64,000 nt of DNA, taken from positions 62,001 to 126,000 of the IMG/VR virus record IMGVR_UViG_3300010430_000003; one strand, written 5' to 3'. Both the position numbers and the translations under genes were made by a program. The notes under the pieces were generated by a model. It had not been told where the DNA came from. It did no database searches and worked only from the letters and a program-made list of their open reading frames with translations. This document shows positions 2 to 63,966 of the stretch, piece after piece (positions within the stretch are counted from its first letter, which is position 1; each line of letters opens with the position of its first letter).

Positions 2-217
2 GAACCTAAAGATAATCTAATTCCTTTTATGGAGGGGATTGAATACCATCGTTCGGAAGGGGTGAGGATTTACAATACAAACGGAAACCGTTCTCAAACT
101 GAAGGTAACGAAGAGAACTATCATAGAAAGAAAATCAAAATTGAAAGATCGTTAGAAAAACTTCTTGAATGGGATCAGGGTGGATATTTCCACAAATACT
201 GTCATAGATATTTATGA
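2..217 (+). CDS. hypothetical protein, 5'-truncated by the window edge
   Basis: Frame is open from base 2 (EPKDNLIPF-MEGIEYH...) to TGA at 215-217. Confidence 0.5.
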   Translation, partial: EPKDNLIPFMEGIEYHRSEGVRIYNTNGNRSQTEGNEENYHRKKIKIERSLEKLLEWDQGGYFHKYCHRYL

Positions 218-423
218 ATTTATTGATTGCGCAATGTTATGTTAACTCTTGGATTGCATCATCTTTCGCGTGGCACACACCCGATCCGATGGTTTTTACT
301 CCAAAACAAAGAAAGACAGTGATGGGTTGGGGATATTTTCCCTTAAGAGCATATAAAGATATAAAACTCTCCATTAATATAATTTTGGAAAATATAAAAT
401 TCAATGACTTCTTTAAATGTTGA
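214..423 (+). CDS. small ORF of the dispersed hNxxh family
   Basis: Begins MNLLIAQCYV; ATGA overlap with the upstream stop; overlaps the gmk start. Confidence 0.6.
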   Translation: MNLLIAQCYVNSWIASSFAWHTPDPMVFTPKQRKTVMGWGYFPLRAYKDIKLSINIILENIKFNDFFKC

Positions 424-985
424 TATGAAAAAAGATATTAAACTAATTGTTATTTGTGGGCCTTCTGGTGTAGGGAAGACGTCAATTGCATCGTTTTTGG
501 TAAAGAGGATTTGGAATTCCTGTTTTTGTGTTTCTCATACAACTCGGAAATCTAGAATTACTGAAATGGATGGAATTGATTATTATTTTGTGTCTGAAGA
601 TAAGTTTGAACAAATGAAAAGCAATAATGAGTTTGCAGAACATGCCCATGTATATGGCCAACAATATGGAACATCATGGGATGTTGTTGAAGAAGACCTT
701 GAAGATGAAATCAAGATTCTTGATGTTGATTATAACGGCGCTGAAGCGATCTACAGTAGATATCCAGACAACACCATTGTCTTTTCTATATTACCACCTT
801 CAATCAAAGAACTCCAAACAAGGCTGAGGCTTCGTGGTACCGATTCTTTAGTTACAATACAGCAACGATTGTTGAGAATTGAAGAAGAGCTTGAATATGA
901 ATTGCAAGTTCCTCATGTGGAAATTATCAATTCAGATATGAGAGAAACCCAGAAAATGGTTATGAAATGTCTTCAACCTCAATAA
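404..985 (+). CDS. gmk: guanylate kinase
   Basis: P-loop GPSGVGKT, plus SHTTRKSR, DGIDYYFV and YGTS motifs. Confidence 0.95.
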   Translation: MTSLNVDMKKDIKLIVICGPSGVGKTSIASFLVKRIWNSCFCVSHTTRKSRITEMDGIDYYFVSEDKFEQMKSNNEFAEHAHVYGQQYGTSWDVVEEDLEDEIKILDVDYNGAEAIYSRYPDNTIVFSILPPSIKELQTRLRLRGTDSLVTIQQRLLRIEEELEYELQVPHVEIINSDMRETQKMVMKCLQPQ

Positions 986-1179
986 ATCTTGATGTGGTGC
1001 ATTCTTGGATATCTTCTAACTGGTATTGGTATGTTCAAACTCATCACTCTCGCGATCAGATAAATAAGAGGGAGAGTTTTATAGTAATACAAGACTATAT
1101 TGAGGTTGAGGAGATGATTGCTGAAGCTCTCCATGAAGGAATTCTTGATCTTTTTGAGAATGATTATTATGAATATTGA
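967..1179 (+). CDS. small ORF of the hNxxh family (tandem paralog A)
   Basis: SINLDVVHSWI; C-terminal EMIAEALHEGIL resembles the next ORF. Confidence 0.6.
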   Translation: MSSTSINLDVVHSWISSNWYWYVQTHHSRDQINKRESFIVIQDYIEVEEMIAEALHEGILDLFENDYYEY

Positions 1180-1354
1180 AATTGCACGTTTATGGTTCGT
1201 ATCATACTGGTGGGGATTTGTTGTTGATGATGCTTGTCATCATACTGTTGATGATAATTCAAGAACAAGTTATATGCATCTCACAATATGTGAAGACTAT
1301 TATGAAATGGTTGATGATGCTCTTTATTATGGAATTTTAAGTGTAGTTCAATAA
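1160..1354 (+). CDS. small ORF of the hNxxh family (tandem paralog B)
   Basis: MIIMNIEIARLWF...EMVDDALYYGIL; start at 1160 or 1169. Confidence 0.6.
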   Translation: MIIMNIEIARLWFVSYWWGFVVDDACHHTVDDNSRTSYMHLTICEDYYEMVDDALYYGILSVVQ

Positions 1355-1375
1355 TCATAAATCAAAATTTTAGAT

Positions 1376-1421
1376 AAAGCCTCTTGTTGTAGCTATTTAT
1401 TAGTGAATAACAAGAGGCTTT
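1376..1421 (+). promoter_or_regulatory. hairpin with late-promoter-like CTATTTAT in the loop and RBS in the 3' arm
   Basis: AAAGCCTCTTGTT (1376-1388) and AACAAGAGGCTTT (1409-1421) form a perfect inverted repeat; GAGG lies just before the TTG start at 1426. Confidence 0.75.
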
Positions 1422-1425
1422 TTCA

Positions 1426-16507: not shown

Positions 16508-16709
16508 CAATGTTATTCGAGATTTCTTCACTTTAAATAAAAGCGAGGTTTTTGTGGTTCATGAAGAGATAAATCACATGTTAACAGAAATTAATTCAGG
16601 TTGGACTTTCCGAGATTTATATTGTATGCCTGTTTCAATGAGAAAATGGTATCACGCAAAATATAATGAGCGTATTCAAAGGATGAATGATGATAACGAT
16701 GGAGAATAA
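16500..16709 (+). CDS. tail/baseplate assembly chaperone (gp51-like)
   Basis: GWTFRDLYCMPVSMRKWY directly after the gp26-like gene. Confidence 0.6.
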   Translation: MSNNVIRDFFTLNKSEVFVVHEEINHMLTEINSGWTFRDLYCMPVSMRKWYHAKYNERIQRMNDDNDGE

Positions 16710-16911
16710 TTCCCTGATTAATTATTTTGTAATGACAAGATATTTTCTTGATGCGCGAAGAATGTTGAAGAACCAACCACCATATGCTAACACCTTAACA
16801 TATATTTATACAAAGCGAATTACACTAAAACCGGATTATATAATTAAAAATTACATTGAAGACATGAGAGACATTGGAGGAGGAAAAATTGAATATTTTA
16901 GAATCTGGTGA
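16699..16911 (+). CDS. small ORF of the hNxxh family
   Basis: LINYFVMTRYFL; sits inside the tail operon and overlaps both neighbours. Confidence 0.55.
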   Translation: MENNSLINYFVMTRYFLDARRMLKNQPPYANTLTYIYTKRITLKPDYIIKNYIEDMRDIGGGKIEYFRIW

Positions 16912-25689: not shown

Positions 25690-26503
25690 AAATATACTCT
25701 CTTCCCTTCAAGATAATGAAATTATTTTAATAGATGAAGTCCTTCACGAAGGATTTGAAACGATTATTGTTAAGCCCGGAAAAGAGGGTCAGTATAAACA
25801 CGAACAGTATGATCAAATAGATCTTACTGAGAGCGATTTAGAGCGATTTAGAGACCAGAGAAAGTATTTTGTGGTGTCAGGTGGCAGTGATATATCTGGT
25901 GCCTCTCTGAAGCTTCTGGAGGCTTTAGGAGGAGAGAATACATCTGTCATTTATATAAAACCAGAGAAGGATAGTTTAACCAATATTCAGGTAATGCAAG
26001 AGAGATTAACTTACGGGGTTTTGCAAGAATCTGCAAGATCTGGTATGTTGAAAGAGATCATATTATTTGACAATAATCATATTGCCTCTTTCTCTGGAAA
26101 AGTGTCGATTAAAAATTACTATCCGACAATTAACAACCATATAACCTATGCAATAAATGCACTAATATTTTGTGAAGAAAATTCACAAGTATTTGGGAAG
26201 AAAAGAGATTACGAAGAATTGAACAGAATTGTTACACTTGGACGCGTTCACGAAAATCAAGAAGTGCTCTTTTTTCCCTTGAGAAATGAGAAAAAAGAAA
26301 CACAATACCCACTGAGCAAGACGTATTGTTATCTGGTCGTTGCAGACCAACTAGAAGATGTCGAGCTTCTCTCATCAGTGAAACAAGAGATATCAACAAT
26401 TAATCTTGGAAACATTGATGAAGTGAATTTTGGAATTTATGAAACACCTTCCAACACAGAATATAAGATGGTAATAATTGAAACTTCGCTAGTTCAAGAA
26501 TGA
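25658..26503 (+). CDS. divergent tubulin/FtsZ-like protein
   Basis: LIGMGEVGKNI (T1-like), VVSGGSDISG (degenerate GGGTGSG), ILFDN, YYPTIN; RBS AAGGAG before ATG 25658. Confidence 0.55.
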   Translation: MLLIGMGEVGKNILSSLQDNEIILIDEVLHEGFETIIVKPGKEGQYKHEQYDQIDLTESDLERFRDQRKYFVVSGGSDISGASLKLLEALGGENTSVIYIKPEKDSLTNIQVMQERLTYGVLQESARSGMLKEIILFDNNHIASFSGKVSIKNYYPTINNHITYAINALIFCEENSQVFGKKRDYEELNRIVTLGRVHENQEVLFFPLRNEKKETQYPLSKTYCYLVVADQLEDVELLSSVKQEISTINLGNIDEVNFGIYETPSNTEYKMVIIETSLVQE

Positions 26504-26805
26504 ATTGTAATATTGTATTGGCGAACAAGATTCTGATGGGGAACTATTTTGATATGCGTGATTATCTATCGAGAGATAGTATCTCCGTAAGAAAGATCAT
26601 TTCTTTGGGGGCAAAAATAGTTCCTATCATTGGACCGGACAGGCACCCATGTTTATCAGACACAGTGTTCAAACCATCATCGAGATTAGATTTATTAAGG
26701 GCTGCCCTTTCCCTTACAACAAAGGAAGGGCTTGCAAGAACAAATACTGAACTTCTCATTCTTTATATGAGTTATAAGAATGTGCTTAGAAGAAACCTAT
26801 TTTAA
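26500..26805 (+). CDS. small ORF of the hNxxh family
   Basis: MNCNIVLANKIL; ATGA overlap. Confidence 0.55.
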   Translation: MNCNIVLANKILMGNYFDMRDYLSRDSISVRKIISLGAKIVPIIGPDRHPCLSDTVFKPSSRLDLLRAALSLTTKEGLARTNTELLILYMSYKNVLRRNLF

Positions 26806-37589: not shown

Positions 37590-38508
37590 TAAAGATAATT
37601 TTCACTTAGCTGGGATTATTCCCATTCATGGGATGGATGTATGGTTTGGTATGCCTTGGCATTTCACTCTACAACCCATAGCAGAAAACTATACAATGAT
37701 AGAAAACGCAGTCATTGAATGTGCGGCTGCTGGTTGTGAAACCATATGGATTGTTGCTTCTGAGAAGACCTCTCCCATGATTAGGAGAAGGATAGGAGAG
37801 TACATTTTAGATCCCAGTTCATATTTTAGATTTAGAACAGATCTTAACAGGCGGTATGTGACAATTCATTATGTGCCGGTGAAACCAATCGATAGAGATA
37901 GAAGAGATTGCTTACCTTGGTCTACAGTATATGGGTGTTTAGCAGCAGACAAGGTCTGTAGATTTATTTCAAAGTGGACCGCCCCAGATAGATATTATAT
38001 TAGCTACCCATGGGGAGTTAAAAACTATTTTGAGATCATTAAAGACAGAAAGAAGATTTCAAGCCCATCAGTCAGGCGCTATTATACATCTTATGATGAT
38101 AAAGATATAACAAATGGATTGCCTCATTCATTTACTCTCTCGTTAGAAGAAGCAAGAGAGTATAAAGAGAAGATAAGAAAAGAAGGAACGGGAAGGTGGG
38201 ACTGGAGTATACCAAAAGACCAATGGAAAAATAAAACATCTCCCGGCATTGCTCTTCCGAAAGAAGAAGCCTATTCTGGTAGACATTTTACATTAGCGGA
38301 TATATTTTCTAATCTTGAAATTTCGGATGAAAAAGATTATAATAGAGAATTAGAGTGGTTCGAGGATATCGGTACTTGGGAAGGTTATTGTGCTTTCCTT
38401 GGAGATACCACAAAAGAAGTAGTGAAGCCTCACTATGCCCTAGCTCATTATAGAGAATGGAATTACTCCTCATTAAGAATTCAGGATTTCAATAAAGATG
38501 AGTCTTAA
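37561..38508 (+). CDS. GT-A/sugar-phosphate nucleotidyltransferase-like protein
   Basis: LAGIIP...LQPI...MIENAV.E...AGCETIWIV; C-terminal WFEDIGTWEGY. Confidence 0.65.
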   Translation: MANSDKTYSDKDNFHLAGIIPIHGMDVWFGMPWHFTLQPIAENYTMIENAVIECAAAGCETIWIVASEKTSPMIRRRIGEYILDPSSYFRFRTDLNRRYVTIHYVPVKPIDRDRRDCLPWSTVYGCLAADKVCRFISKWTAPDRYYISYPWGVKNYFEIIKDRKKISSPSVRRYYTSYDDKDITNGLPHSFTLSLEEAREYKEKIRKEGTGRWDWSIPKDQWKNKTSPGIALPKEEAYSGRHFTLADIFSNLEISDEKDYNRELEWFEDIGTWEGYCAFLGDTTKEVVKPHYALAHYREWNYSSLRIQDFNKDES

Positions 38509-38767
38509 AGAAGCTTTAAAAAAATATGATTGGATGGTTTCTCGTGAAATAAAAGAACCAAACTTAACGATAAGACAGCATTTTATTGATTCTGTTATCC
38601 CGCCACACGCATGGTTTCTTGGAAAGGGTTATAAGCTTCATGCTCGTCACTGCTACTTGTTCAAGTCTAAATTAAAAAAGCGACAATCTCTTAGTAACAC
38701 CACATCAGTATTAATGGTATGTAACCTTTATTCTTTTCGAACCTTGGTTGAAGAGATAAGAAAATGA
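38498..38767 (+). CDS. hNxxh family, tandem array member 1
   Basis: PNLTIRQHFIDSVIPPHAW. Confidence 0.65.
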   Translation: MSLKEALKKYDWMVSREIKEPNLTIRQHFIDSVIPPHAWFLGKGYKLHARHCYLFKSKLKKRQSLSNTTSVLMVCNLYSFRTLVEEIRK

Positions 38768-39024
38768 CGGAAATCAACCTTCTTATTAATAGACTTTATC
38801 TCGCATCAATTAAGGATATCTATAAATGGGTTTCTCCTGATGGAGCGTTTATTCTTGTTTTTTATGGTCATCTTAATCATAATATGAAAAACATTACAAT
38901 ATCCCAAGAATTATTTGCTGATAGGTTTCCTACTCACTTATTGAAATATATGCTTGAGACTGATCTTAAGCACAGCTTTCATATGCTAACCAACTCTTTA
39001 TTGGATGTAAATGAACACAATTAG
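38764..39024 (+). CDS. hNxxh family, tandem array member 2
   Basis: INLLINRLYLASIKDIYKW. Confidence 0.65.
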   Translation: MTEINLLINRLYLASIKDIYKWVSPDGAFILVFYGHLNHNMKNITISQELFADRFPTHLLKYMLETDLKHSFHMLTNSLLDVNEHN

Positions 39025-39190
39025 TTTAAATTGGTTTATTAGGAAATATTTTGTTGATTCTGTTGCTCCACCTCCTACGTGGGTAACTAACTGTCCTTTT
39101 AGACATAGAGTCTCCGCTTCAAGTCATAGAAGTGTAAGGGTTTATAAACCCCGTGTATTCAGGAGATTTATTCCATATGTTGACTTCTAA
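39011..39190 (+). CDS. hNxxh family, tandem array member 3 (59 aa, absent from the ORF track)
   Basis: Translated by hand: MNTISLNWFIRKYFVDSVAPPPTWVTNCPF...PYVDF*. Confidence 0.65.
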   Translation: MNTISLNWFIRKYFVDSVAPPPTWVTNCPFRHRVSASSHRSVRVYKPRVFRRFIPYVDF

Positions 39191-39446
39191 TATTAATAGA
39201 GAAGTTAAATTATACTTTTTAAGTAGTGTACAGCGTTCTACCACATGGATTAATGGATATAATAAATATTGGGGTTTAGATCATCCTAAAATTTATTATG
39301 TGAGTTATAAATTCTATAGAAGGAAAAGCTGGACGACTGATGAAATTAAAACATTCGACACAGTTAAATCTTTTAACTACACGATTAAAATGCTTGAGAG
39401 AGACAATGGTTCCCGAGATTACTGCAGAGAGACATACATATATTAA
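39177..39446 (+). CDS. hNxxh family, tandem array member 4
   Basis: INREVKLYFLSSVQRSTTW; AGGAG upstream. Confidence 0.65.
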   Translation: MLTSNINREVKLYFLSSVQRSTTWINGYNKYWGLDHPKIYYVSYKFYRRKSWTTDEIKTFDTVKSFNYTIKMLERDNGSRDYCRETYIY

Positions 39447-39660
39447 TTCCGTGGTTAAGACGCATTTTCTAGATTCAATAGAAAATCCATTCAGTTGGTT
39501 TGTGATAAAACCCCCCGGATTTAAGCGAAGATATAAATCCCTAGGGATTTTTCGTACAAGGAATAGCTTTATCATCAGAAAGGCAAGATATTTATTTAGA
39601 ACCTTTAAACCCTATGTTATTGATTCCTTGATTAAACATAAAAACATGGTAGTTCATTGA
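39406..39660 (+). CDS. hNxxh family, tandem array member 5
   Basis: INSVVKTHFLDSIENPFSW; stop overlaps the dnaE start. Confidence 0.6.
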   Translation: MVPEITAERHTYINSVVKTHFLDSIENPFSWFVIKPPGFKRRYKSLGIFRTRNSFIIRKARYLFRTFKPYVIDSLIKHKNMVVH

Positions 39661-42600: not shown

Positions 42601-43064
42601 CGGTAGATAAGCCAAAAACAGAAGAGAAATTACTTGAAAATATTGAGAACCCTGTTTATAGAGAAGAAGGAGACTTCACAAGAGAGGAAAAGATAATACT
42701 TAAGGCAGATCTAACCAAAATGTTTCCACTCAGAGATATTGTCAGCCAGAAGGCAGAGAACATCATGAGGAAATATGATACATACCCAGTATCTGAATGG
42801 CAGGGCATGCAATACAAATATTGGTTCGTGGTTAGAAATTGTATTGAGAAAAAGGACAGACGAAAACGACCCTATTGGATTTTAGAAGTAATGGATTCAT
42901 CATTCAAGATGCAAAAAATTAAGTGTTGGGGTATAAAAGCACAAGAGGATATGATTATGAAAAATCGTCTATATGTAGCTGATCACATTGAATATGATGA
43001 GAAGTGGGGTTATTCGACAGGATGGAAGAATCCACCAAGGAAAAATTTCAAGTTGGTATCATGA
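39657..43064 (+). CDS. dnaE: DNA polymerase III alpha subunit
   Basis: PHP domain (LHQHSHYS..DG, LTDHG), GRGSGGGSL, PDIDVD, RHAGG, KFDLLGL, GFNKSHAVAY. Confidence 0.97.
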   Translation: MKEKDIKFVGLHQHSHYSVFDGFGAPNEAIDFAIKNGSRALALTDHGTMAGLAEQVLHSKKLEREGVDFKPIYGIEAYYHPSINDWQNQYEEHNSKSGKKSKKDRDAEQGSVVVEDEDYGEAPAEGLNLNHRRHMVLLAKNQTGLNNLFSMISKSYTRPYYYRYPRIDLELLKQHREGIVATSACIGGLLGLDYFLNKEEGEEAVKKAMRGTVESMMDIYGSDFYGELQWNALDAQHEINKHIIDLHHEYGFELISTADAHFPSPEHWRNRELYKRLGWIGKKDKVSDIPDSIEDMEYQLYPKNGNQMWESYKKYSEKFGHSYDDKLILDSIERTHDISFNKVEKFYPDNSIKLPSFISDVDDYDAELRKIATQELVKRGLSNNKEYVERVEKELAVIIKKGFSRYFITTETMVNIARELMLIGGGRGSGGGSLVAYLLGITEIDPLRWNLQFERFLREDDDAYPDIDVDIEDPMILKEHLAELWGEDSVAPVSNWVTMKFKSAIKDVAKLYEVPYGEVNDVTTKMMDEAIPRAKAAAGQSSGVYDPSFDECKQYSPTFAEFLEKYPDLEHPIRSMQGTIKSLSRHAGGLIVADNLSSQIPLIRSSDIMQTPWKKDLLEPMGFIKFDLLGLDTLKMFHECIERILRLEKGIKKPTFEQIRGWYEENLSPDNINLQDSKVWEVFKKGNWLGTFQFTGNGAQRFCKSIEPDDLITLAIITSIFRPGPLEAGVHKDYVEALNNPNSIHYLNDIHREVAGSTLGFLVFQEQIAELAHKLGKNISLDEGNYLRKLLTKRNSNKEKVEVFREKFVEGCLEKDISQDDAEELFRKFEYFSGYGFNKSHAVAYGIISYQCAYLWTYYPIYWATAFLETTDKKKLDGAIAEVRSYGIEIETPNINKSSKRWEVGEDKRLYQPLTSINGIADAFYAQVEPHRPFYSIEEMLFHEEMKTPNKSALSALIRAQALNDLMDERFTGLKHFWSAVAVDKPKTEEKLLENIENPVYREEGDFTREEKIILKADLTKMFPLRDIVSQKAENIMRKYDTYPVSEWQGMQYKYWFVVRNCIEKKDRRKRPYWILEVMDSSFKMQKIKCWGIKAQEDMIMKNRLYVADHIEYDEKWGYSTGWKNPPRKNFKLVS

Positions 43065-43261
43065 ATATAAATATAATTATAAGTAAAATGTATGTCTGTT
43101 GTTATGACAGCGGCGATGTCTTGACAATATCAAGAAATGGAATTGGGTACCGAGCATCTAATTATGGCTCTTGGTTTTCTGAAATTTTGAAAGACAACTA
43201 TATTGCTGTAATAGGGATGAGGAAAAAAGATTTTGAAATCAAAACAAAGTTTGAACTATAA
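43061..43261 (+). CDS. small ORF of the hNxxh family
   Basis: MNINIIISKMYV; ATGA overlap with dnaE. Confidence 0.6.
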   Translation: MNINIIISKMYVCCYDSGDVLTISRNGIGYRASNYGSWFSEILKDNYIAVIGMRKKDFEIKTKFEL

Positions 43262-43433
43262 AATAGCTTATACAGTATTAAACAGTATAACTTATCTCTG
43301 GTATGCTATCGATAATGATGACGATTTTACGAGGCGAACTTATTTGCTACATATCAGTACTAGCAACACAATTGTTCCCACGAGGATTTTTAATCAAGAA
43401 GAATTAGAAGTGTTATATTTTAAGGAGAATTAA
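43233..43433 (+). CDS. small ORF of the hNxxh family
   Basis: SLNYKIAYTVLNSI. Confidence 0.55.
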   Translation: MKSKQSLNYKIAYTVLNSITYLWYAIDNDDDFTRRTYLLHISTSNTIVPTRIFNQEELEVLYFKEN

Positions 43434-43888: not shown

Positions 43889-44934
43889 AAAACAAGCTAT
43901 TTGATGAAAACTGTTCATTTTCATATGATGATTTGCTTTTAAAGCCTCAATTGTCTGATATTAAGTCAAGAAGTGAGATTGATATCAGCACACATCTTGG
44001 TTCTTTCAAAAAGAACATTGCTATGGGCATTCCTATTATTGCTTCTCCAATGCAAACAATTTGTGAAGAGGACATGCAAAATGCATTTGCAGAATTTAAT
44101 AGCTTTGGAATCATTCACAGATATTGCTCAATTCCTGAACAAGCGGCTACAATCAAAAAATGCGGCGGTGATAAAATTGCATTTGCAACAGGGGCTACTG
44201 GTGATTATATGGAAAGAGCGATTGAAGGAGTAAAAGCAGGGGCAAACATCATTTGTGTAGATGTTGCCAATGGTTATAATACAATGATCAAAGAAGCAAT
44301 CAGAAATATTAAGATTGAATTTGGAGATGATGTTTTTATAATTGGTGGCAATGTTGCTTGTTCTGATGGATTCAATTTCTTAGCAGATCTTGGATTATCA
44401 GGAATTAGAGTTGGTGTTGGCGGTGGAAGCATTTGTGCCACTCGCATCCAAACAGGTCATGGCATGGGGACAGCAGCATCTTTATATGATATTGCAAACA
44501 ACAAAAAAGGACATAGTTGTACTGTCATTGCTGATGGTGGAATTCGTTATTCCGGAGATATTGTGAAAGCGTTAGCTCTTGGGGCTGACTCTGTTATAGT
44601 TGGTTCTTTTATAGCAGGTACCATTGAAACTCCGGGTAGTATATTTGAGCATGAAGGAAGGAAGGTTAAAAAGTATGAGGGGATGGCTTCTAAGGCTGCC
44701 CAAGAGGGCTTTTTAGGATATTCTAAGTCAGTTGAGGGTGTCTCTACAGTGGTGGGCAGCAGAGGTAGCGTGATTGATACGTTAAACTTCACATCGATGG
44801 AGATTAAGTCAGGACTATCTTATACAGGAGCCAAGACGCTCTCCCAGTTGAGGTATAAAGCTAAATTTATGGTTCAAACAGAGGTATCGAGAGTTGAAAG
44901 TAGCCCTCACATTTATATGCAAGATAAACTATGA
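43885..44934 (+). CDS. guaB: IMP dehydrogenase/GMP reductase (no CBS domain)
   Basis: GVGGGSICATR, IADGGIRYSGDIVKAL, YEGMAS, SYTGA. Confidence 0.85.
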   Translation: MKNKLFDENCSFSYDDLLLKPQLSDIKSRSEIDISTHLGSFKKNIAMGIPIIASPMQTICEEDMQNAFAEFNSFGIIHRYCSIPEQAATIKKCGGDKIAFATGATGDYMERAIEGVKAGANIICVDVANGYNTMIKEAIRNIKIEFGDDVFIIGGNVACSDGFNFLADLGLSGIRVGVGGGSICATRIQTGHGMGTAASLYDIANNKKGHSCTVIADGGIRYSGDIVKALALGADSVIVGSFIAGTIETPGSIFEHEGRKVKKYEGMASKAAQEGFLGYSKSVEGVSTVVGSRGSVIDTLNFTSMEIKSGLSYTGAKTLSQLRYKAKFMVQTEVSRVESSPHIYMQDKL

Positions 44935-45119
44935 GCAGCAAATACATTAACTTTGTGTTAAGCAGGAATTATTGGTTAGGAACACCGTTTGCAGAACATC
45001 TTTGTACAGGGTGTAGGGTCATCGTAGTTAAAACTAGCATGAGTTCAGTGAGAGGTAATGTCTTTAAGATTAAATGGATTAAGGAAGACTTAAGTAGCAT
45101 GAGAAGACACAATGGATGA
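44931..45119 (+). CDS. small ORF of the hNxxh family
   Basis: YINFVLSRNYWL; ATGA overlap. Confidence 0.55.
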   Translation: MSSKYINFVLSRNYWLGTPFAEHLCTGCRVIVVKTSMSSVRGNVFKIKWIKEDLSSMRRHNG

Positions 45120-45462
45120 TGAATTTAATTTAGAAAAGCTTGAAAAAGAACTGGGTCCGATGAAGCATGTTATCTTTCGGGAAACTGATAAAAGACATGC
45201 AGACCTTAAGATTAAATTGGATTATGAAAAGTTAACACAATCTGATTTTTTTCGAATGATGGTTACTGGTTACCTTAATAACGATCCAAGAATTACAGAT
45301 TTCATTAAGGAGTGGAAGTTGAGCAACAAATCAGACTCACAGCGTTCTATTAAGATTATTGATGATGATAGGAAGAAGGCGCAGGATATCAATAAGTTGT
45401 TGGGTGTATCTGAAGATAGTGATACTTTGTTTGATATTATTGAAGATGATTTTGATATATGA
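45112..45462 (+). CDS. hypothetical protein (possible ribbon-helix-helix-like)
   Basis: HVIFRETDKRHADLKIKL....LTQSDFFR. Confidence 0.65.
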   Translation: MDDEFNLEKLEKELGPMKHVIFRETDKRHADLKIKLDYEKLTQSDFFRMMVTGYLNNDPRITDFIKEWKLSNKSDSQRSIKIIDDDRKKAQDINKLLGVSEDSDTLFDIIEDDFDI

Positions 45463-45623
45463 ATGTAAATTTACTAGTTCTTAATTCTGTGTTTGATTCA
45501 TCAACAAGTATGATTAATAAGACTTCGTTGCTAATAGATCTTAGAGGTTCATATTTTGGGAGAGACAAAGAGTATAATGTTGACATCAAGTTTTATTTGA
45601 GAATGTTGAAAGGTCTTAAATAA
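45459..45623 (+). CDS. small ORF of the hNxxh family (54 aa, absent from the ORF track)
   Basis: Translated by hand: MNVNLLVLNSVFDSS...YLRMLKGLK*; ATGA overlap. Confidence 0.55.
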   Translation: MNVNLLVLNSVFDSSTSMINKTSLLIDLRGSYFGRDKEYNVDIKFYLRMLKGLK

Positions 45624-49472: not shown

Positions 49473-49512
49473 CGACCCTTCGTGCTATTTAATGTGATAA
49501 CACGGAGGGTCG
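49473..49512 (+). promoter_or_regulatory. RBS-sequestering hairpin with late-promoter-like CTATTTAA in the loop
   Basis: CGACCCTTCGTG / CACGGAGGGTCG 12-bp stem (one G-U) covers GGAGG. Confidence 0.8.
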
Positions 49513-49514
49513 TT

Positions 49515-50159
49515 ATGTTTAGATTATTTGATTTTATTTTACAATTTATCAAGCCCTTAAGGGTTGGATTAGAAGCAGCAGAAATTTCTGTTCCTGAAAA
49601 ACTTGCAAGAATCGCCGAAAAAGAATGGGAAAGAAACATTGAGGAAAAAACACATCAGATCAACCTTGAAATTACAGCCATGTTTGACAATAATGGATGG
49701 GGAAGCTGGCTGCGCTCTGTTGATGGTGGAGGTTGCCCTAACGGGTATCTAAGACCCCCAGACCCCGATTGGTGCGGACAAGCAGTTGCCCATTATGTTT
49801 TAAAGATGAGTCCTTCCCCAAATAAGAAAATGGCAAGAAAAGTGTTGGTCTCAACCTATAGACTCAATCAAAAGGATAAATGGTTACAGTGTGATGTTAG
49901 TTTTCCTTTGGTTGAAGATAGTGGTGATATACAAAGAGGCGACATCGTTGTAGTTCGTTGGGAAAATGGTAAAGAGTATGGAGATCACATTACTTTAGCT
50001 GTATCCGATCTAAAAGAAGATGGTACTTTTGACACAATTGAAGGAAATGCGAAAGGGGAGTTGCCAAATGGAAGTGGTAGAGGACTTGTTAAGCAGAATA
50101 GAAAAAAAGACCAAGTCGCAAGAGTGTATAGACTTACAAAAGAACACTTTAATCAATAA
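49515..50159 (+). CDS. CHAP-domain peptidoglycan hydrolase (putative endolysin)
   Basis: DWCG, GDIVV, DHITL, TIEGN; true start probably ATG 49515 after GGAGG. Confidence 0.8.
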   Translation: MFRLFDFILQFIKPLRVGLEAAEISVPEKLARIAEKEWERNIEEKTHQINLEITAMFDNNGWGSWLRSVDGGGCPNGYLRPPDPDWCGQAVAHYVLKMSPSPNKKMARKVLVSTYRLNQKDKWLQCDVSFPLVEDSGDIQRGDIVVVRWENGKEYGDHITLAVSDLKEDGTFDTIEGNAKGELPNGSGRGLVKQNRKKDQVARVYRLTKEHFNQ

Positions 50160-50322
50160 GATGGTTGTTGCCTATTTCTTAAATATGTATTCTCATTATA
50201 CAACAATGTATATTAGAGCTAACATTAGAAGAAATAATCCAAGATTTTCTAGAAGAACTAGAGCAATATTCTCGTATGAACACCATGACTTAATGATTAG
50301 CGACATGGATAGACATTTTTAA
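50146..50322 (+). CDS. hNxxh family module, start codon uncertain
   Basis: TLINKMVVAYFLNMY overlaps the CHAP stop; no start codon immediately before the motif. Confidence 0.4.
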   Translation, partial: TLINKMVVAYFLNMYSHYTTMYIRANIRRNNPRFSRRTRAIFSYEHHDLMISDMDRHF

Positions 50323-50334
50323 GAGGTTTATAAT

Positions 50335-51936
50335 TTGAATTGGAATGACAAAAAAATTGAGAAAGCAATAAATGTATTGCATGAAAGCGTTACTGTGGCA
50401 CAAGCCTGTAACGAAATCTCAGATTTGTTAGGCGATGATGTTACTCCTGACTCGCTAAGAAAAGCATTTCAAAGAAATGGTTATAATAGCCCTTCTAATT
50501 ATCTCACAGCAATTTCACCTGAAGAGTTATACGAAGAGTTATTCGATGAAGAATTAGAAGAAGAGGTTGATGAAGAGTTATATGATGAATACGAAGCAGA
50601 TGGAGATTATCACTATAATGAAATGACTGATCTTTATCTTGTGTATGTTCCTCACAAAAGAAAACCAATGCAAATTCCCGGTAAATTAATGAGGGAGTGG
50701 AATGAGGCATATTCAAATATGTCAGTTGGTGGTGCTGAAACCATCAACCAAATTTGTAAGACATGGAACATTTCTAGGAAAGACTTCGTCTCTATTAAGA
50801 AGGCTATGAGATGGACTCATGATCAAGACCCCTTTACTGATGAGGAGCACTTAACGAGTGATCCTGCTGATCTCGCTGAGAATCTTGTTCAAAAGAAGCG
50901 CCTTGCTTTTGAAAAACATTTCAGAAAAAAGGAATGGAAGGAGATTGAGAAAGACGCCATTAATTGGAGAGAGCTTTCTTACCATCTAGGAGCAACACCA
51001 AATCTTAAAGCAGTTAAGGAGACCATCGATGATATTAAAAATATTGAACGGTATTGTCAAAATATATCGATTGATAAGAAAGTTTCTAAAAAGGAAATAA
51101 AGGCTAAAAAGGGTAGCACCCTAATCATTCCAATTTCTGACCTTCATGTTGGCAAGAAGTTTACTACAAAGAGTGTGAAACATAAAAACTTTAATCTGTC
51201 TGAATTGAAGAAGAGACTGGCTAGGGCAATGGGATACATTACCATGGCTAAACCACAATTTGAAGACAGAGTGTCTCATATTGTCTATTCATCCCTTGGT
51301 GATAACTTTGAAGCTATCTTTGGGAATATGCGACCCGGCCAACACTTAACAATGGATCTGTTTGGCGCTGACCAATATAAAGAAGTGGTTGAATTTCATG
51401 TTGAGCTTATCTCTTTCATTAGAGAGGAGTTTCCAGATGTAACTATCACAGCAGTATTTCAAGGTGGTAATCATGATAGGATTTTTGGAGCTAAGCAGTG
51501 GGATTCAGAAGAAGTTCTAAACTATATAATGACAGATAGAATTGCTGCTGAATTTAAGGATGTGCCTGCAAAAGATCTTGAGGTTTTAGTTGGTGAGCCT
51601 GTGTCTTCTATTACTATGCCAAATGGTGTAAATTTAATTACACAACACGGTCACCTTAAGGGTTTGAAGAATCACAAGGATATCGCAAACTTCATTAATA
51701 TGCACGGAGACAAAAAAGCCCCTCGGTATTTGATTTCGCAAGGTCACTTTCATCATTGGGAAACAATCTCTGGCTTTAACTATAAGTTCTATATGAACTC
51801 ATCGTTCTGCGGAAACGATTCATATAATCTAGAGAAGATTGGGGTAGGTTCTCCCGCCGAATTCATGATGGTTGAATCTGCCGTTAATAACGACATATTC
51901 TATGGACCATATAATCTTGAAGAAGATGTTTTTTGA
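50335..51936 (+). CDS. calcineurin-like metallophosphoesterase with an N-terminal HTH-like region
   Basis: SDLHVG, LGD, GNHD, HGH, GHFH. Confidence 0.85.
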   Translation: MNWNDKKIEKAINVLHESVTVAQACNEISDLLGDDVTPDSLRKAFQRNGYNSPSNYLTAISPEELYEELFDEELEEEVDEELYDEYEADGDYHYNEMTDLYLVYVPHKRKPMQIPGKLMREWNEAYSNMSVGGAETINQICKTWNISRKDFVSIKKAMRWTHDQDPFTDEEHLTSDPADLAENLVQKKRLAFEKHFRKKEWKEIEKDAINWRELSYHLGATPNLKAVKETIDDIKNIERYCQNISIDKKVSKKEIKAKKGSTLIIPISDLHVGKKFTTKSVKHKNFNLSELKKRLARAMGYITMAKPQFEDRVSHIVYSSLGDNFEAIFGNMRPGQHLTMDLFGADQYKEVVEFHVELISFIREEFPDVTITAVFQGGNHDRIFGAKQWDSEEVLNYIMTDRIAAEFKDVPAKDLEVLVGEPVSSITMPNGVNLITQHGHLKGLKNHKDIANFINMHGDKKAPRYLISQGHFHHWETISGFNYKFYMNSSFCGNDSYNLEKIGVGSPAEFMMVESAVNNDIFYGPYNLEEDVF

Positions 51937-52127
51937 TGAATAAGATTATTAGTTATATGCTTTTGAGTGAAATTTATTCAAGTCAAGTTATACAACATTA
52001 TATAATGAGATTTAGAGCTACATTATCAAACGCTAAATGTAGAGAGCATCTTGGATTTTGGTGGGGACCACACAGATACACTAGAAACTATACCTATGTT
52101 GTGAGAATGAATAAAGAAAATCTATGA
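51933..52127 (+). CDS. small ORF of the hNxxh family
   Basis: MNKIISYMLL. Confidence 0.55.
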   Translation: MMNKIISYMLLSEIYSSQVIQHYIMRFRATLSNAKCREHLGFWWGPHRYTRNYTYVVRMNKENL

Positions 52128-52375
52128 ATTTAAACATAATGATAGCAAGAGGTATCATTCATGATAAAACCAAGAACTTGTTGGGCTCCGATCCGTTAAG
52201 CTTTGAACTGAGAACATCGCTGCACACCGCAAGGAGAATAAGAAGTATCAAGGATGGTTGGGAGGTTAGCAACCCTTTTCCTTTATTGATCGCCTTGGAA
52301 GAAATAGATGAAACTGGACTCTTGAAAGTAAGCATAACAACTTTTATTGATAGAAGGCTATATGAAGAAATATAA
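52124..52375 (+). CDS. small ORF of the hNxxh family
   Basis: MNLNIMIARGII; ATGA overlap. Confidence 0.6.
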   Translation: MNLNIMIARGIIHDKTKNLLGSDPLSFELRTSLHTARRIRSIKDGWEVSNPFPLLIALEEIDETGLLKVSITTFIDRRLYEEI

Positions 52376-57689: not shown

Positions 57690-57694
57690 TCTTT

Positions 57695-57766
57695 TCGGAG
57701 ATCGTCTAACTGGCAAGACACAGGACTTTGAATCCTGCAATCTAGGTTCGAACCCTAGTCTCCGAA
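57695..57766 (+). tRNA. tRNA-Gln(TTG), CCA not encoded
   Basis: TCGGAGA/TCTCCGA acceptor, GTCT/AGAC D stem, CAGGA-CTTTGAA-TCCTG anticodon arm, CTAGG-TTCGAAC-CCTAG T arm. Confidence 0.95.
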
Positions 57767-57767
57767 T

Positions 57768-58022
57768 ATGAATGTGGAAAGAAATGTGCATATGGAAAAA
57801 GATATTAGAATAGCTCATTTTAAATATGATGTTAATTTGTATTTAGCTTCTCTTGTAATTTGGGAATATGGCATCTTCTACTACGGTCGCGTCCGCTCAC
57901 GACATCATAATTTATATACGAGTAGCATATTAGAAATTGACATCCCTAATATTTTAGGGACCCTTATGGTCATAGGGAAGTTCCCCAAGCCATTCAGAGA
58001 AATCAATAAATACTATGAATAG
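57768..58022 (+). CDS. small ORF with an hNxxh module
   Basis: DVNLYLASLVIW. Confidence 0.5.
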   Translation: MNVERNVHMEKDIRIAHFKYDVNLYLASLVIWEYGIFYYGRVRSRHHNLYTSSILEIDIPNILGTLMVIGKFPKPFREINKYYE

Positions 58023-59778: not shown

Positions 59779-60691
59779 TACTGTTGCATATGTTTCCTCG
59801 GTTATAAGAGCCTCCTCTTTTGATCGTTCTACTGGATATCTTTATAAGATTGATCTAGAAAGTGGTGAGATCTTAGAAAAATATGATTGGAATGGATCAT
59901 ATGAAGATTTCATGAATAACGAAAGAGGTGGCGAACGAGGCATAAGAGGGCTTGAGATTTATGACGGTAAACTCTATGCGGCAGTTAATAGAGGAATACT
60001 AGAATTTGATTTAGACCTTAATCTCATTCGCAAAGAAATCGATAGAAGATTCTTGGCAGGATTACATGAGATATGTGAATTTCAAGATAAACTATATGTA
60101 ACATCAACTGGCTATGATGGTATTGCAGAAGTAGACTTCAAAACTCTAAAAGTAGAGAAGATTTGGATCTTCAATAAGATTATGCAAAAATCAAGACTTC
60201 TATTGCATAATAGGCCCAAACTCAAGGACCAGTTTCATATTAATTCAATTTCTGCTTTTGCTGATAGGCTTGTTTATGGGAGTTCAAAGATGAAAGGTCA
60301 TTTAGATTTCTTTGAATTCAAAGAGATTCATCAACACCCAAAACCAAAAGGAACGTTTAAGCACAATACATATGAATATGAGGATTGTTATGTATCTTTG
60401 ATTACAAATAAAGAGGAGTTCTATTACTTCAATAAGAAGACTGGTAAACATAAATATATTCCTATCAAGTTTAGTGATCATGACACCTTCAAGACTAAAG
60501 AAAAAGAAGGGGTTGCTAAATACAATTGGCTAAGAGGTTTAGAGAGGTTAGATGAAGATAGGTTTGTTATTGGAAGTTCTCCAGCTAGGATTGGAATTTT
60601 CAATGTTAAAACAGAAGAATTGGAAAGAGAATTCTTCTTCTCTGATGATGTTAAAAATTGCATTCATGGTATAAAGCTCCTAACAGTATGA
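59771..60691 (+). CDS. beta-propeller-like hypothetical protein
   Basis: Repeated RG/HE/HIN/HN blade-like motifs (GIRGL, LHEI, HINSI, WLRGL). Confidence 0.65.
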   Translation: MSDTVAYVSSVIRASSFDRSTGYLYKIDLESGEILEKYDWNGSYEDFMNNERGGERGIRGLEIYDGKLYAAVNRGILEFDLDLNLIRKEIDRRFLAGLHEICEFQDKLYVTSTGYDGIAEVDFKTLKVEKIWIFNKIMQKSRLLLHNRPKLKDQFHINSISAFADRLVYGSSKMKGHLDFFEFKEIHQHPKPKGTFKHNTYEYEDCYVSLITNKEEFYYFNKKTGKHKYIPIKFSDHDTFKTKEKEGVAKYNWLRGLERLDEDRFVIGSSPARIGIFNVKTEELEREFFFSDDVKNCIHGIKLLTV

Positions 60692-60879
60692 ATATTAATC
60701 TTAAAATAGCTACTCACTTAACTCTCGAACAAGGTTTATCTCGTTCTAGTGCAGTGTCAGAGTGGATGAGGTTTTTTGAGTTGAGAGACTCTTATGTTAA
60801 GCCTACACATACAGGCGAGTGGGCACAGTTGATTGGGAGAAATAATTCACTAAGAATGTTACGTAAGGTGTTGAGGTAA
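60688..60879 (+). CDS. small ORF of the hNxxh family
   Basis: MNINLKIATHL; ATGA overlap. Confidence 0.6.
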   Translation: MNINLKIATHLTLEQGLSRSSAVSEWMRFFELRDSYVKPTHTGEWAQLIGRNNSLRMLRKVLR

Positions 60880-61886: not shown

Positions 61887-61986
61887 ACTGGTAGGAAATA
61901 TGTTTAAGTTAGCTAAAACATGTTTGGCAGGCGTATATTATCAATGCATGGAATGATTATGCCGGGTTCGAATCCCACTACCAGTG
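61887..61986 (+). ncRNA. second tRNA-like RNA
   Basis: ACTGGTAG/CTACCAGT stem, GGG-TTCGAAT-CCC T-arm, AAATATGTTT/AAACATGTTT and GGCGTA/TATGCC inner hairpins. Confidence 0.55.
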
Positions 61987-62180
61987 TTGTTAATAAGAAA
62001 GTTGCAAAGTTGTACATGTTGCAATATTATTTTCAATATGTTGAAATTATCAAAAAATTTGATGGTGGCAGGGATTGTTATTTGGGGTATGCTAATAAAT
62101 TAAGTTATAAAGAATCTATCTCTTCTAAAATAATAAACATTGGACGATTAACACAAAAACAACAAAAGGAAAGAACATGA
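61986..62180 (+). CDS. hNxxh family module, start codon uncertain
   Basis: VVNKKVAKLYML begins immediately after the tRNA-like RNA. Confidence 0.4.
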   Translation, partial: VVNKKVAKLYMLQYYFQYVEIIKKFDGGRDCYLGYANKLSYKESISSKIINIGRLTQKQQKERT

Positions 62181-62530
62181 AATTTCGACACATTTACCTC
62201 TCTGATCATAATGAAAACCCAATGCCTGTTGCTACCATCTGTAGTGTTCAACATGAAGGTGCTGTAAGGTTTGCAATGGCAAGGTGCAACACACTAGACC
62301 AATTTGCAAAACGAACAGGTCGGAGAATCTCTCAAGGGCGGTTAGAAAAATGTAAGAGTCTTACAGGCTTCGCGTCACCCTTCACAGAAAGACTAGAGTC
62401 GCTCTTTAATAATGATTGCGCTCTCTTCACAAAAGAAGAAATCCCAGACCTGTTGAAAGCTCTTAAGAAGGAACTTTCTTTTAGGCACGACAAGACTTAT
62501 CGTGAGCTTGCACAGGAAAGGTCAATTTAG
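62177..62530 (+). CDS. hypothetical phage protein
   Basis: A.C...DQF.K..GR.I...R pattern; RBS. Confidence 0.7.
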   Translation: MKFRHIYLSDHNENPMPVATICSVQHEGAVRFAMARCNTLDQFAKRTGRRISQGRLEKCKSLTGFASPFTERLESLFNNDCALFTKEEIPDLLKALKKELSFRHDKTYRELAQERSI

Positions 62531-62571
62531 AACCACCCTTAATTTATTAATCTAGACAAACTCATAAGTGT

Positions 62572-62805
62572 ATGATGGAAGAAAAAAACAAAAGAGATCT
62601 TAAGAGAATTAGAGAAAAAGCTCTTAGAGATAGAGAAGTAGAAAAGGGTGTGCATGATGGGCGTATGTATACCAAAGTCCATAAAGTCAGAAAAGACAAG
62701 AACATTAACTATGAAGACGAAATGGATGAGTATTTTTGGGAAGAAGAGGAAATAGAAGAGCCTTCCGACGAAGAAGAAATTGAAGCATCACCTTGGAGAC
62801 GATAA
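62572..62805 (+). CDS. small basic/acidic hypothetical protein
   Basis: Basic N-half, acidic C-half. Confidence 0.55.
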   Translation: MMEEKNKRDLKRIREKALRDREVEKGVHDGRMYTKVHKVRKDKNINYEDEMDEYFWEEEEIEEPSDEEEIEASPWRR

Positions 62806-63008
62806 TGGATTCGTATATTAATATATTGATTCATTATCGTTTTTATGGAGACCTCCCAATGATACCTGAATTGCTGTATCAAAACTTTGAAATGGAACAA
62901 TATTCATCATCTATGTCTTCCTTTAATGAAAGCGAATATAAAGAAGACAACATATATTATGATTATGATCTTAACGGTTTAACTACATTACTGGAGACCA
63001 ATGCCTAG
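62805..63008 (+). CDS. small ORF of the hNxxh family
   Basis: MDSYINILIHYRFY; GGAG RBS; TAATG overlap. Confidence 0.6.
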   Translation: MDSYINILIHYRFYGDLPMIPELLYQNFEMEQYSSSMSSFNESEYKEDNIYYDYDLNGLTTLLETNA

Positions 63009-63582
63009 TCATTCATTTTGGTACACTGATACCAATGTTATTAAGAAAATATATGAGGTTTTTAACTATATTACTATCGATCCAACAACCTCCCCGGAAG
63101 CCAACAAGCGTGTCCGTGCTGAGTTCGTTTACACGATCGATGACTCATGCCTGACGACCCCGAAATGGCTTCCTGACGCCCCTGACGGCGCTGTGACGTG
63201 CTATATGAACCCCCCTTATTCTAAGGACTGTGATGGTACAAAACCCTATGTGGTTAAGCTATTAGAACAGCTAGATAAAGGTGTTGTTAACGCAGCTATC
63301 GTGCTTGTTAATTCATCTACTTCTTCAAGCTGGTTCCAGCTTTTAATGAAAAACAGTGAGCTTGTTTGTTTTCCATCAAAAAGGTTGTGTTTTGATGAAG
63401 ACCTTGATTACGTCAAGAAATATGTTGATCCCGAAGAGCCAGGGCATGGGCTAAAGACTGGCAAAGCTCCGAGATATGATAATGCTGTTTTTCTCTTAAT
63501 AAGTGACAGTTCATACAGTCATTATGCAGAGAACTTTATTGATTCTTTCTCCTCAATGGGTAGTGTATTAAAATTGGTATGA
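63001..63582 (+). CDS. phage N6-adenine DNA methyltransferase (Dam-like)
   Basis: WYT...IDP, YMNPPYS, WFQ, RLCF. Confidence 0.85.
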   Translation: MPSHSFWYTDTNVIKKIYEVFNYITIDPTTSPEANKRVRAEFVYTIDDSCLTTPKWLPDAPDGAVTCYMNPPYSKDCDGTKPYVVKLLEQLDKGVVNAAIVLVNSSTSSSWFQLLMKNSELVCFPSKRLCFDEDLDYVKKYVDPEEPGHGLKTGKAPRYDNAVFLLISDSSYSHYAENFIDSFSSMGSVLKLV

Positions 63583-63791
63583 ACTCTTCTACTATAAATA
63601 AATGGGTTGTAGAACGGTATGCTTCGTCATACACTTTTTGGCATGGCGCTATAATTGAAACAAACAAATTCACAAGTAGGGGCACTCGCACGAAAATTCG
63701 ATTTATTCAGATAGATGGAGAGTTGCGATATAAAGTTCTGAAGGCGTGGCTATCTTTATACAATCTTGTTGATGATAAATACAGAGATTAA
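63579..63791 (+). CDS. small ORF of the hNxxh family
   Basis: TINKWVVERYA; ATGA overlap. Confidence 0.6.
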   Translation: MNSSTINKWVVERYASSYTFWHGAIIETNKFTSRGTRTKIRFIQIDGELRYKVLKAWLSLYNLVDDKYRD

Positions 63792-63966
63792 TAGATTAAT
63801 AGTAGATAATTTGATTTGTGAATTATCAGGTTCGTGGAAAGTGTATGGATTTTGTAAATATAGTCGATTAACTTACACACAAATATTGGAGATACCATAC
63901 CCATACGTTATTATACATATTGGCAACATGAGAGAACTATATGAAAGACATGCTCATAACCGGTAG
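63772..63966 (+). CDS. small ORF of the hNxxh family
   Basis: EINRLIVDNLI. Confidence 0.6.
   Translation: MINTEINRLIVDNLICELSGSWKVYGFCKYSRLTYTQILEIPYPYVIIHIGNMRELYERHAHNR

Follow-up and report, generated by a model that had tools for sequence, protein, structure and literature searches.

Do the small open reading frames (ORFs) that lie in the junctions between conserved genes of a large uncultured phage form a single gene family, and what do they have in common? The question is raised by a window of 64,000 nucleotides (nt), at about positions 62,001 to 126,000 of the 210,326-bp IMG/VR contig IMGVR_UViG_3300010430_000003, which is that of an uncultured giant ("jumbo") T4-type myovirus from marine sediment. 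An earlier note, made from the sequence of the window, had described about 26 small junction genes that share an N-terminal motif. This description stands, with 25 members now counted in the window (24 are firm; the start of one is unclear), and the family proved to be larger than had been claimed. Our results indicate that the members are real protein-coding genes and constitute one lineage-specific multigene family of proteins of ~60 to 70 amino acids (aa).

The gaps between the large ORFs of the window measure ~200 nt or multiples of this length, and small + strand ORFs fill them. All 21 motif peptides quoted in the earlier note were found on the + strand, at or near the positions that it had given. 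The loose pattern alone is a weak criterion, with 110 matches over the three + frames, or ~0.0017 per position, and it is the placement of the motif, not the frequency of the pattern, that departs from chance. Among junction ORFs, defined as + strand ORFs of 50 to 130 codons with at least 60% of their length outside large genes, 27 of 41 carry the motif 50 to 105 aa before the stop codon, where ~2.4 would be expected. The corresponding fractions were 4/64 for + strand shadow ORFs, 2/23 and 7/192 for two sets of - strand ORFs, 2/50 for the N termini of large genes, and 40/923 (4.3%) for junction ORFs in 1.36 Mb of DNA from relatives. With controls at 3 to 9%, a motif frequency no higher than that of chance, which the earlier note had named as grounds for abandoning its proposal, was not borne out. 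The distance from motif to stop codon is 52 to 99 aa in the window, with a median of 63 aa and an interquartile range of 59 to 68 aa over 72 members. Several of the ORFs are called by public gene callers. As had been reported, they usually overlap their neighbors, most start codons lying 1 to 41 nt inside the upstream gene (in the forms ATGA, TGATG, and TAATG), and such start-stop overlap is the usual sign of coupled translation.

The family extends well beyond the window. A hidden Markov model (HMM) built from the N termini of 31 hand-picked members and applied with a cutoff of at least 5 bits gave 75 matches in 131.6 kb of the contig (from about 43 to 175 kb), versus 0.3 expected from the 1.36 Mb of relatives' DNA under identical criteria. 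The scan of the wider genome that the earlier note had proposed thus revealed more members than it had reported, and as 131.6 kb of the 210-kb contig was covered, the total of 75 is a lower bound. All matches lie on the local coding strand, which is the + strand up to 150 kb and the - strand from 150 to 168 kb, where further members are found in a block of - strand genes. Nearly all members are situated in the replication, nucleotide metabolism, and array regions; no HMM match was found in the packaging and head module at 43 to 60 kb, and three members come immediately after the major capsid gene. The array, outside the window at about 143.2 to 148.6 kb of the contig, consists of ~25 consecutive head-to-tail members with a pitch of ~190 nt (L133:18413-20627 and L134:10194-13640) and is located just downstream of a gene for a sigma-70-like protein (L133:17432-18277). 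Its members mostly begin with MN-INIIIA, and some neighbors are similar over their full length, including a C-terminal R-F-x3-Y-P. The family has thus been expanded by tandem duplication, and the array looks like its source.

How widely is the family distributed, and how do its members evolve? It was not found at 117 loci from phages whose DnaE is 43 to 53% identical to that of the window (IMG/VR and metagenome scans), and the equivalent slots in these relatives hold other small genes. Such relatives are common in marine metagenomes (TARA and GOS-type samples). A word-based protein search with the family alignment returned only the proteins of the window itself, and in IMG/VR a degenerate DNA pattern encoding N-I-N-I-I-I-A yielded nothing useful, its more than 119 single matches being due to chance. 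BLASTP within the window recovers two subfamilies only, designated A (967 and 1169) and B (38498, 39011, 39177, and 39406), the numbers being start positions of members in the window. An exhaustive profile search with subfamily B identified three non-identical homologs, on a 28.5-kb Logan contig (SRR29270393; L137/L138) with the same gene order. Four further profile matches were spurious, three of them (P0007, P0011, and P0013) being low-complexity repeat proteins. We conclude that the family is restricted to this T4-like jumbo phage and one or more close relatives.

Comparison with this relative provides the strongest evidence that the ORFs are genes, namely, their conservation. The neighboring core genes are 78 to 93% identical between the two phages (59% in one case), with nonsynonymous divergence (dN) of 0.04 to 0.17 (0.28 for one 295-aa gene) and ratios of nonsynonymous to synonymous divergence (dN/dS) of 0.02 to 0.14. 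Orthologous members are 31 to 64% identical, with dN of 0.28 to 0.71 and dN/dS of 0.16 to 0.51, all dN/dS values being rough because dS is saturated. Retained orthologs thus show a dN 5 to 10 times that of their neighbors, with dN below dS. The ortholog of the member at 52124 keeps the motif behind a TTG start codon. The contents of the junctions in the two phages are as follows.

Junction before DnaE: five members in the window, four in the relative.
Junction from DnaE to dUTPase: two members in the window, one in the relative that is unrelated beyond the motif.
Junction from the 349-aa gene to the 116-aa gene: one member in the window, two in the relative.
Junction after the 116-aa gene: one member in the window, two in the relative.
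Junction from the 533-aa gene to GroEL: two members in the window, one in the relative.

Between the window and L137, the DNA at the DnaE junction is alike over the first ~30 nt of the mini-gene, after which identity collapses. Whole units, their translation coupled to that of the adjoining genes, are therefore gained, lost, or replaced at gene junctions between related phages, and the suggestion of the earlier note that the units spread by duplication and insertion into junctions agrees with both this turnover and the tandem array. From the enrichment, the orthologs with dN/dS below 1, and the turnover of slots, it follows that the mini-genes are real, fast-evolving accessory genes. The members in the window, with bit scores referring to the N-terminal HMM, are listed below.

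214..423, + strand, member of 69 aa with MNLLIAQCY at residue 1; ATG overlaps the upstream stop (ATGA); 12.5 bits.
967..1179, + strand, member of 70 aa with INLDVVHSW; subfamily A, 29% identical over 62 aa to 1169..1354.
1169..1354, + strand, member of 61 aa with MNIEIARLW; subfamily A; gene call in public data (P0001).
16699..16911, + strand, member of 70 aa with INYFVMTRY; gene call in public data (P0002).
26500..26805, + strand, member with CNIVLANKI, long form of 101 aa; ATGA overlap with the upstream gene; 10.6 bits.
29713..29946, + strand, member of 77 aa with LNLLVSSKI; identified by motif and N-terminal HMM.
36020..36253, + strand, member of 77 aa with INMYVWCSY, directly after the gene for the ribonucleotide reductase (RNR) large subunit; identified by motif and HMM.
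38498..38767, + strand, member of 89 aa with PNLTIRQHF; subfamily B; ortholog in the relative 34% identical.
38764..39024, + strand, member of 86 aa with INLLINRLY; no counterpart in the relative (L137).
39011..39190, + strand, member of 59 aa with LNWFIRKYF; subfamily B; ortholog (P0010) 59% identical.
39177..39446, + strand, member of 89 aa with INREVKLYF; subfamily B; ortholog (P0009) 39% identical.
39406..39660, + strand, member of 84 aa with INSVVKTHF and an alternative ATG at 39340; subfamily B; ortholog (P0014) 46% identical; its end overlaps the DnaE start.
43061..43261, + strand, member of 66 aa with MNINIIISKMY; ATGA overlap with the DnaE stop; 16.0 bits; a different member in the relative's slot.
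43233..43433, + strand, member of 66 aa with a TTG start and LNYKIAYTV; identified by motif and HMM; no counterpart in the relative.
44931..45119, + strand, member of 62 aa with INFVLSRNY; public gene call (P0003); two other members in the relative's slot.
45459..45623, + strand, member of 54 aa with VNLLVLNSV; two longer members (90 and 96 aa) in the relative's slot.
50152..50322, + strand, probable member with INKMVVAYF; no canonical start before the motif; 6.2 bits; the relative's copy 44% identical.
51936..52127, + strand, member of 63 aa with MNKIISYML; TGATG overlap with the upstream stop; whole unit missing in the relative (L138).
52124..52375, + strand, member of 83 aa with LNIMIARGI, directly upstream of the GroEL-like gene; public gene call (P0004); ortholog 64% identical, making it the best-conserved member.
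57792..58022, + strand, member of 76 aa with VNLYLASLV; ortholog in the relative 31% identical.
60688..60879, + strand, member of 63 aa with MNINLKIATHL; ATGA overlap with the upstream gene; 13.6 bits.
61962..62180, + strand, member with VNKKVAKLY and an uncertain start (ATGs at 61923-61962); 10.3 bits.
62805..63008, + strand, member of 67 aa with INILIHYRF; TAATG overlap with the upstream stop.
63579..63791, + strand, member of 70 aa with INKWVVERY; ATGA overlap; AlphaFold2 prediction helix-strand-strand-helix.
63772..63966, + strand, member of 64 aa with INRLIVDNL; 8.6 bits.

The ORF of the probable member at 50152 is open from 50020 and runs, in a different frame, over the 3' end of the gene before it (49482-50159); it may be translated from a noncanonical start or through a frameshift out of that gene. 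Two candidates were set aside. LNLLIAKNT, which the earlier note had counted within an ORF at 30952, lies (at 31105) in the middle of a protein, and its membership is doubtful. INNIIRNMY (55397) lies in mid-chain in a 97-aa protein (55298-55591) that is probably not a member, since the relative's ortholog carries Asp instead of the Asn; the protein nevertheless scores 7.9 bits with the N-terminal HMM and illustrates a false positive.

What is shared by the members is a block of 13 residues, h-N-h-h-[IV]-[AS]-x-x-[YF]-h-x-[SED]-h (h, hydrophobic), which is the only sequence conserved across the family. The length of 13 was set because positions outside the pattern first noticed are also conserved in the alignment of the 31 hand-picked members: counting from the invariant Asn, Ala fills position +5 in 11 of 31 members yet accounts for 2.8% of family residues, a hydrophobic residue is found at +9 in 30 of 31 (Leu or Ile in 17), +11 holds Ser, Glu, or Asp in 23 of 31 (Ser in 13, Glu in 6), and +12 is mostly hydrophobic. 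The block begins 0 to 19 residues after the start codon and is often preceded by Met-Asn, as in "MNIN...". Its conserved hydrophobic positions are spaced as on one face of an amphipathic helix, and a helix is predicted here in both AlphaFold2 models that are described below, in agreement with the constant N-terminal amphipathic helix that had been proposed.

The constraint on this block acts at the level of the protein, as the earlier note had argued from its Asn codons. The codons of the invariant Asn (AAT:AAC, 54:18) and of the Ala and Val residues in the block follow genome usage (67:33 for Asn), and no DNA information or conservation was detected upstream of the motif. Only two genuine DNA-similar pairs occur among the 72 copies, so that frame-shifted or recent DNA duplicates were rejected as an explanation. 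A DNA-level element (promoter, T4 late promoter, or RNA gene) was likewise rejected, there being no upstream information and motif scans remaining at background: TATAAATA, the T4 late-promoter motif, was not enriched (7 matches versus 5.3 expected), and neither were promoter-like sites (43 versus 35.7) or terminator-like sites (8 versus 5.6). The only RNA gene found in the window with Rfam and ARAGORN was that of a tRNA-Gln.

The ~50 residues that follow the block are hypervariable, yet their length is kept. They are rich in Arg, Tyr, and Trp and poor in Ala and Gly; over the members, Y, R, M, H, C, N, and W are enriched and A, G, Q, E, and D are lowered. A remainder rich in Y, W, F, and R had been noted previously, and this holds for Tyr, Trp, and Arg, whereas Phe is not enriched. 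The absence of relationship past the motif was confirmed in that no family-wide similarity was detected and the C-terminal parts of 72 candidates link only into clusters of two to four (BLASTP and jackhmmer). Family-wide C-terminal homology was rejected, as leave-one-out HMMs gave weak signals (median rank 68/415 against decoys and 69/201 against the members' own shuffles), and apparently conserved Arg and Tyr columns in C-terminal MAFFT alignments were artefacts, since shuffled C termini give equal or stronger Tyr columns. None of 73 members matched Pfam or PHROGs at an E value of ≤0.001, so the possibility that the ORFs resolve into unrelated known families was not realized. As for the large library of variable payloads proposed in the earlier note, the uniform length of ~63 aa speaks against payloads of an arbitrary kind and favors one small domain size. 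AlphaFold2 predicts for the member at 63579 a helix (residues 3 to 17), a hairpin (22 to 44), and a second helix (47 to 68), with a predicted local distance difference test (pLDDT) score of 71, and for the member at 43061 an N-terminal helix (pLDDT 86 over the first ten residues) followed by a low-confidence hairpin and helix (60 overall). Foldseek gave no significant fold match (best E values, 0.47 in the PDB and 0.30 in BFVD), and no relative of the family profile was found in the PDB.

What might such proteins do? The explanation that we consider best, and to which as a whole we give somewhat better than even chances, joins the family described above to an accessory role in host interaction. 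Of the first part, that is, one family with a shared helix and rapid turnover of units, we are highly confident. The functional part is tentative and in our estimate less likely than not: the members would be accessory host-interaction proteins of the takeover or counterdefense type, occupying plastic slots of a T4-type genome, in which the shared helix would do the same job in all members (contact with a shared partner, or else oligomerization) and the variable part would confer specificity. It is plausible that the helix would be a shared docking or targeting element, as the earlier note had proposed. Several observations weigh against this explanation. The members' codon usage score (-0.085), which lies between those of shadow ORFs (about -0.24 to -0.32) and real genes (+0.124) and to that extent speaks for coding, is weaker than in typical genes, and the saturation of dS leaves the dN/dS values rough. 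Ile codons at two motif positions depart from genome usage, which may reflect shared descent or some DNA-level constraint. Both structural models are of moderate or low confidence and were built on an alignment that is uninformative in its C-terminal columns, and the helix could simply be buried in the core of a small fold and not form a contact surface. A stronger form of the explanation, in which the 13-residue helix would be a dedicated address tag read by one machine of the phage or host (for example, the prohead core, the chaperonin of the phage, a protease, or the transcription apparatus) and ~100 rapidly diversifying modules would act as interchangeable cargo or adaptors, strikes us as rather doubtful.

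The alternatives differ in what the conserved block is for. If the helix were only the folding nucleus of a helix-hairpin-helix domain, the members would be independent, fast-evolving effectors with no shared partner, and the N terminus would be conserved only as the part least tolerant of change. The constant domain length, the like order of helix, hairpin, and helix in both AlphaFold2 models, the position of the conserved residues on one hydrophobic helix face, and the weak residual C-terminal signal against own shuffles are all consistent with this. We nonetheless regard it as unlikely, as ordinary diverged families conserve their core along the whole chain, whereas no conserved position is detectable here beyond residue 13, and as an invariant Asn, with no Ser, Thr, or Asp, exceeds the needs of helix capping; the models invoked are themselves of low confidence. 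Less probable in our estimate is a capsid-targeting tag as in T4, by which the block would send the mini-proteins into the prohead core, to be packaged and ejected as internal counterdefense proteins. The genome does encode a T4-type head module (Peptidase_S77, Gp23-like capsid protein, and T4-type portal), the major capsid gene is the one followed directly by three members, the members are mostly small and basic (pI 8 to 11 in 22 of 31), and the internal proteins of T-even phages are highly diverse and conserved only in their capsid-targeting sequence (PMC3012670). Such a tag would, however, be expected to carry a conserved Glu cleavage site, which was not found after the block, the residue at +11 being Ser about twice as often as Glu; moreover, the variable distance of the block from the start codon leaves no fixed N terminus, the 43- to 60-kb packaging and head module is devoid of members, PHROGs, which would include the T4 internal proteins, gave no similarity, and ~80 different cargo species would be unprecedented.

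Two further explanations place the constraint elsewhere. The conserved 5' end might be a short homology patch for the swapping of units, making the mini-genes semi-selfish recombination cassettes like those defined by a promoter early stem-loop (PeSL). Such shuffling is documented in T4-like phages (PMC2839356 and PMC4122927), and the indels of whole units exactly at unit boundaries, the array pitch of ~190 nt, and the run of DNA identity through the end of DnaE into the beginning of a mini-gene before its collapse would all fit. We consider this very unlikely: there is almost no DNA similarity between copies (the two pairs among 72), third codon positions within the block vary, neither a promoter/stem-loop signature nor an intergenic spacer was found, ~20 to 30 nt of degenerate homology is a poor substrate for recombination, and selection on the protein would be left unexplained. 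Alternatively, the motif could be a chance pattern in AT-rich noncoding junction DNA, or the ORFs could encode leader-bearing precursors like those of ribosomally synthesized and posttranslationally modified peptides (RiPPs). The loose regular expression is indeed common, ORF composition is atypical, and a conserved leader with a variable core superficially resembles RiPP precursor families. Nevertheless, the enrichment exceeds 10-fold with stringent controls and the ORFs are kept in the relative with dN below dS, by which the chance reading is largely refuted. As for RiPPs, no modifying enzyme family was recognized in the precomputed Pfam lists of 131 kb (called genes only), the would-be cores of ~50 aa have no bias toward Cys, Ser, or Thr (Ser 1.13 times and Thr 1.01 times the level in large genes; Cys 1.3%), and no Gly-Gly type cleavage motif was found. 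Both readings are effectively excluded.

The earlier note's statement that no described system has this layout was too strong, as two close analogues exist, although the family departs from both in key features. In T4, the capsid-targeting sequence sits on hypervariable internal proteins (IPI, IPII, IPIII, and their T-even variants), which, like the members described here, are small, often basic, and highly diverse between related phages; they share only a short conserved N-terminal peptide (PMC3012670), to which the 13-residue block, 0 to 19 residues from the start codon, may be comparable. Both occur in T4-type phages, and this genome encodes a T4-type prohead protease. The family differs in having no sequence similarity to these proteins at the Pfam and PHROGs threshold given above and in lacking their cleavage site (Leu/Ile-x-Glu), for which Leu or Ile is present at +9 in 17/31 members and Glu at +11 in only 6/31. 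It also has ~80 copies rather than a handful, and its genes are located in replication, array, and accessory regions and not with the head genes. PeSL cassettes and ORFans fill the hyperplastic regions of T4-like phages (PMC2839356 and PMC4122927) and are likewise small genes in plastic slots between T4-type core genes, with indels and replacements beside a short repeated element. This boundary feature is present in the turnover at the DnaE, dUTPase, 349-aa/116-aa, and 533-aa/GroEL junctions, where identity ends just past the block. In contrast to PeSLs, the repeated element lies here inside the coding sequence and is kept as protein, not DNA; no promoter or terminator was found, and there is no intergenic spacer because members overlap the upstream stop. 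In addition, the ORFans of T4-like phages are mutually unrelated, whereas the mini-genes are one family. Precursor families with a leader and a variable core, such as prochlorosins, and polymorphic toxins (PMC3482391), such as MuF-domain fusions, also combine a constant N-terminal recognition part with a hypervariable C terminus in many copies. Here, however, no modifying or trafficking enzyme and no toxin/immunity pairs were recognized, the constant part is only 13 aa long, and the variable part is of fixed length.

The family itself is undescribed and is closest in kind to a virus multigene family or to the accessory genes of hyperplastic regions. Multigene families are a feature of large DNA viruses, as in the MGFs of African swine fever virus and the gene amplification of poxviruses. 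These families resemble the present one in their lineage-specific expansion to tens of copies, tandem arrays, copy number turnover, and presumed roles in host interaction, and differ in belonging to eukaryotic viruses and in comprising larger proteins that are similar over their whole length. We know of no phage report of tens of copies of one family sharing only a 13-residue block, nor of a comparable paralogous expansion in a phage. The 131 kb covered of this 210-kb phage contain 75 or more genes of a single undescribed family that is united only by such a helix. Its fixed N terminus and length, free remainder, visible turnover, and source-like array make the family a useful model for the origin and upkeep of accessory gene diversity in phages. 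Should the helix be an address or docking tag, it would offer a handle for pulling down all members and identifying their common partner, and the tag might serve packaging or targeting, as the capsid-targeting sequence of T4 already does; a true library of address-tagged modules would amount to a combinatorial effector system encoded by a phage, on a scale that has not been described previously. Were the helix only structural, the family would still represent extreme sequence divergence at constant size.

With respect to the phage itself, the window has a G+C content of 37%, its long ORFs are all on the + strand, and its genes include those for a tail sheath, the RNR large subunit, a DnaE-type polymerase, and a GroEL-like chaperonin. 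On the same contig, the flanking genes encode a T4-type portal, a Peptidase_S77 prohead protease, a Gp23-like capsid protein, and gp13, and further ones a terminase, dUTPase, Dam, and the sigma-70-like protein, which contains regions 2 and 4. Megablast against GenBank phages gave no match to the window, and the DnaE proteins of the nearest cultured phages are less than 30% identical (tblastn). The same phage genotype is present, at 99.97 to 100% identity, in at least eight other assemblies (L040 to L048, L050, L052, L108, L135, and L136; ENA ERZ27250782/806/856/943 and JGI 3300005590, 3300005601, 3300005612, 3300005920, 3300027967, and 3300027978), and because of this near identity, dN/dS from strain variation within the phage is uninformative. 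The DnaE-type (Pol III alpha) replicative polymerase (39657-43064) stands alongside an otherwise T4-type head. No GroES-like gene was recognized on this phage, which carries the GroEL-like gene at 52347-53969, preceded and overlapped by the best-conserved member (52124-52375). A homolog of ribosomal protein S21 (L051:4493-4747) is encoded between the prohead protease and capsid genes, outside the window.

Five dispersed tRNA genes were found on the contig (Gln-TTG, Ile-TAT, Arg-TCT, Met-CAT, and Leu-TAA), one in the window and the others at L049:14490-14566, 15931-16002, and 19166-19238 and at L133:16570-16644. The one in the window is as follows.

57694..57767, + strand, tRNA-Gln(TTG), found with ARAGORN/Rfam; a family member comes immediately after it.

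A motif-bearing ORF lies within about 25 nt after each of the five tRNAs, the ORF after tRNA-Arg being only a candidate. The phage tRNA-Ile(TAT) reads ATA, a codon that is over-used at motif position +4 (18 of 47 versus 16% in the genome). At about 61947-61985, inside the N-terminal extension of the member at 61962-62180, lies GGTTCGAATCC, a sequence characteristic of tRNA T-arms; no tRNA was called there by ARAGORN or by Rfam (E ≤ 1), and the GGTTCGAATCC site possibly represents a tRNA remnant. Two adjacent 125-aa genes (11243-11620 and 11623-12000), located in the tail region a short way upstream of the tail sheath gene, are paralogs of each other, with 46% identity (E value, 1.6e-38).

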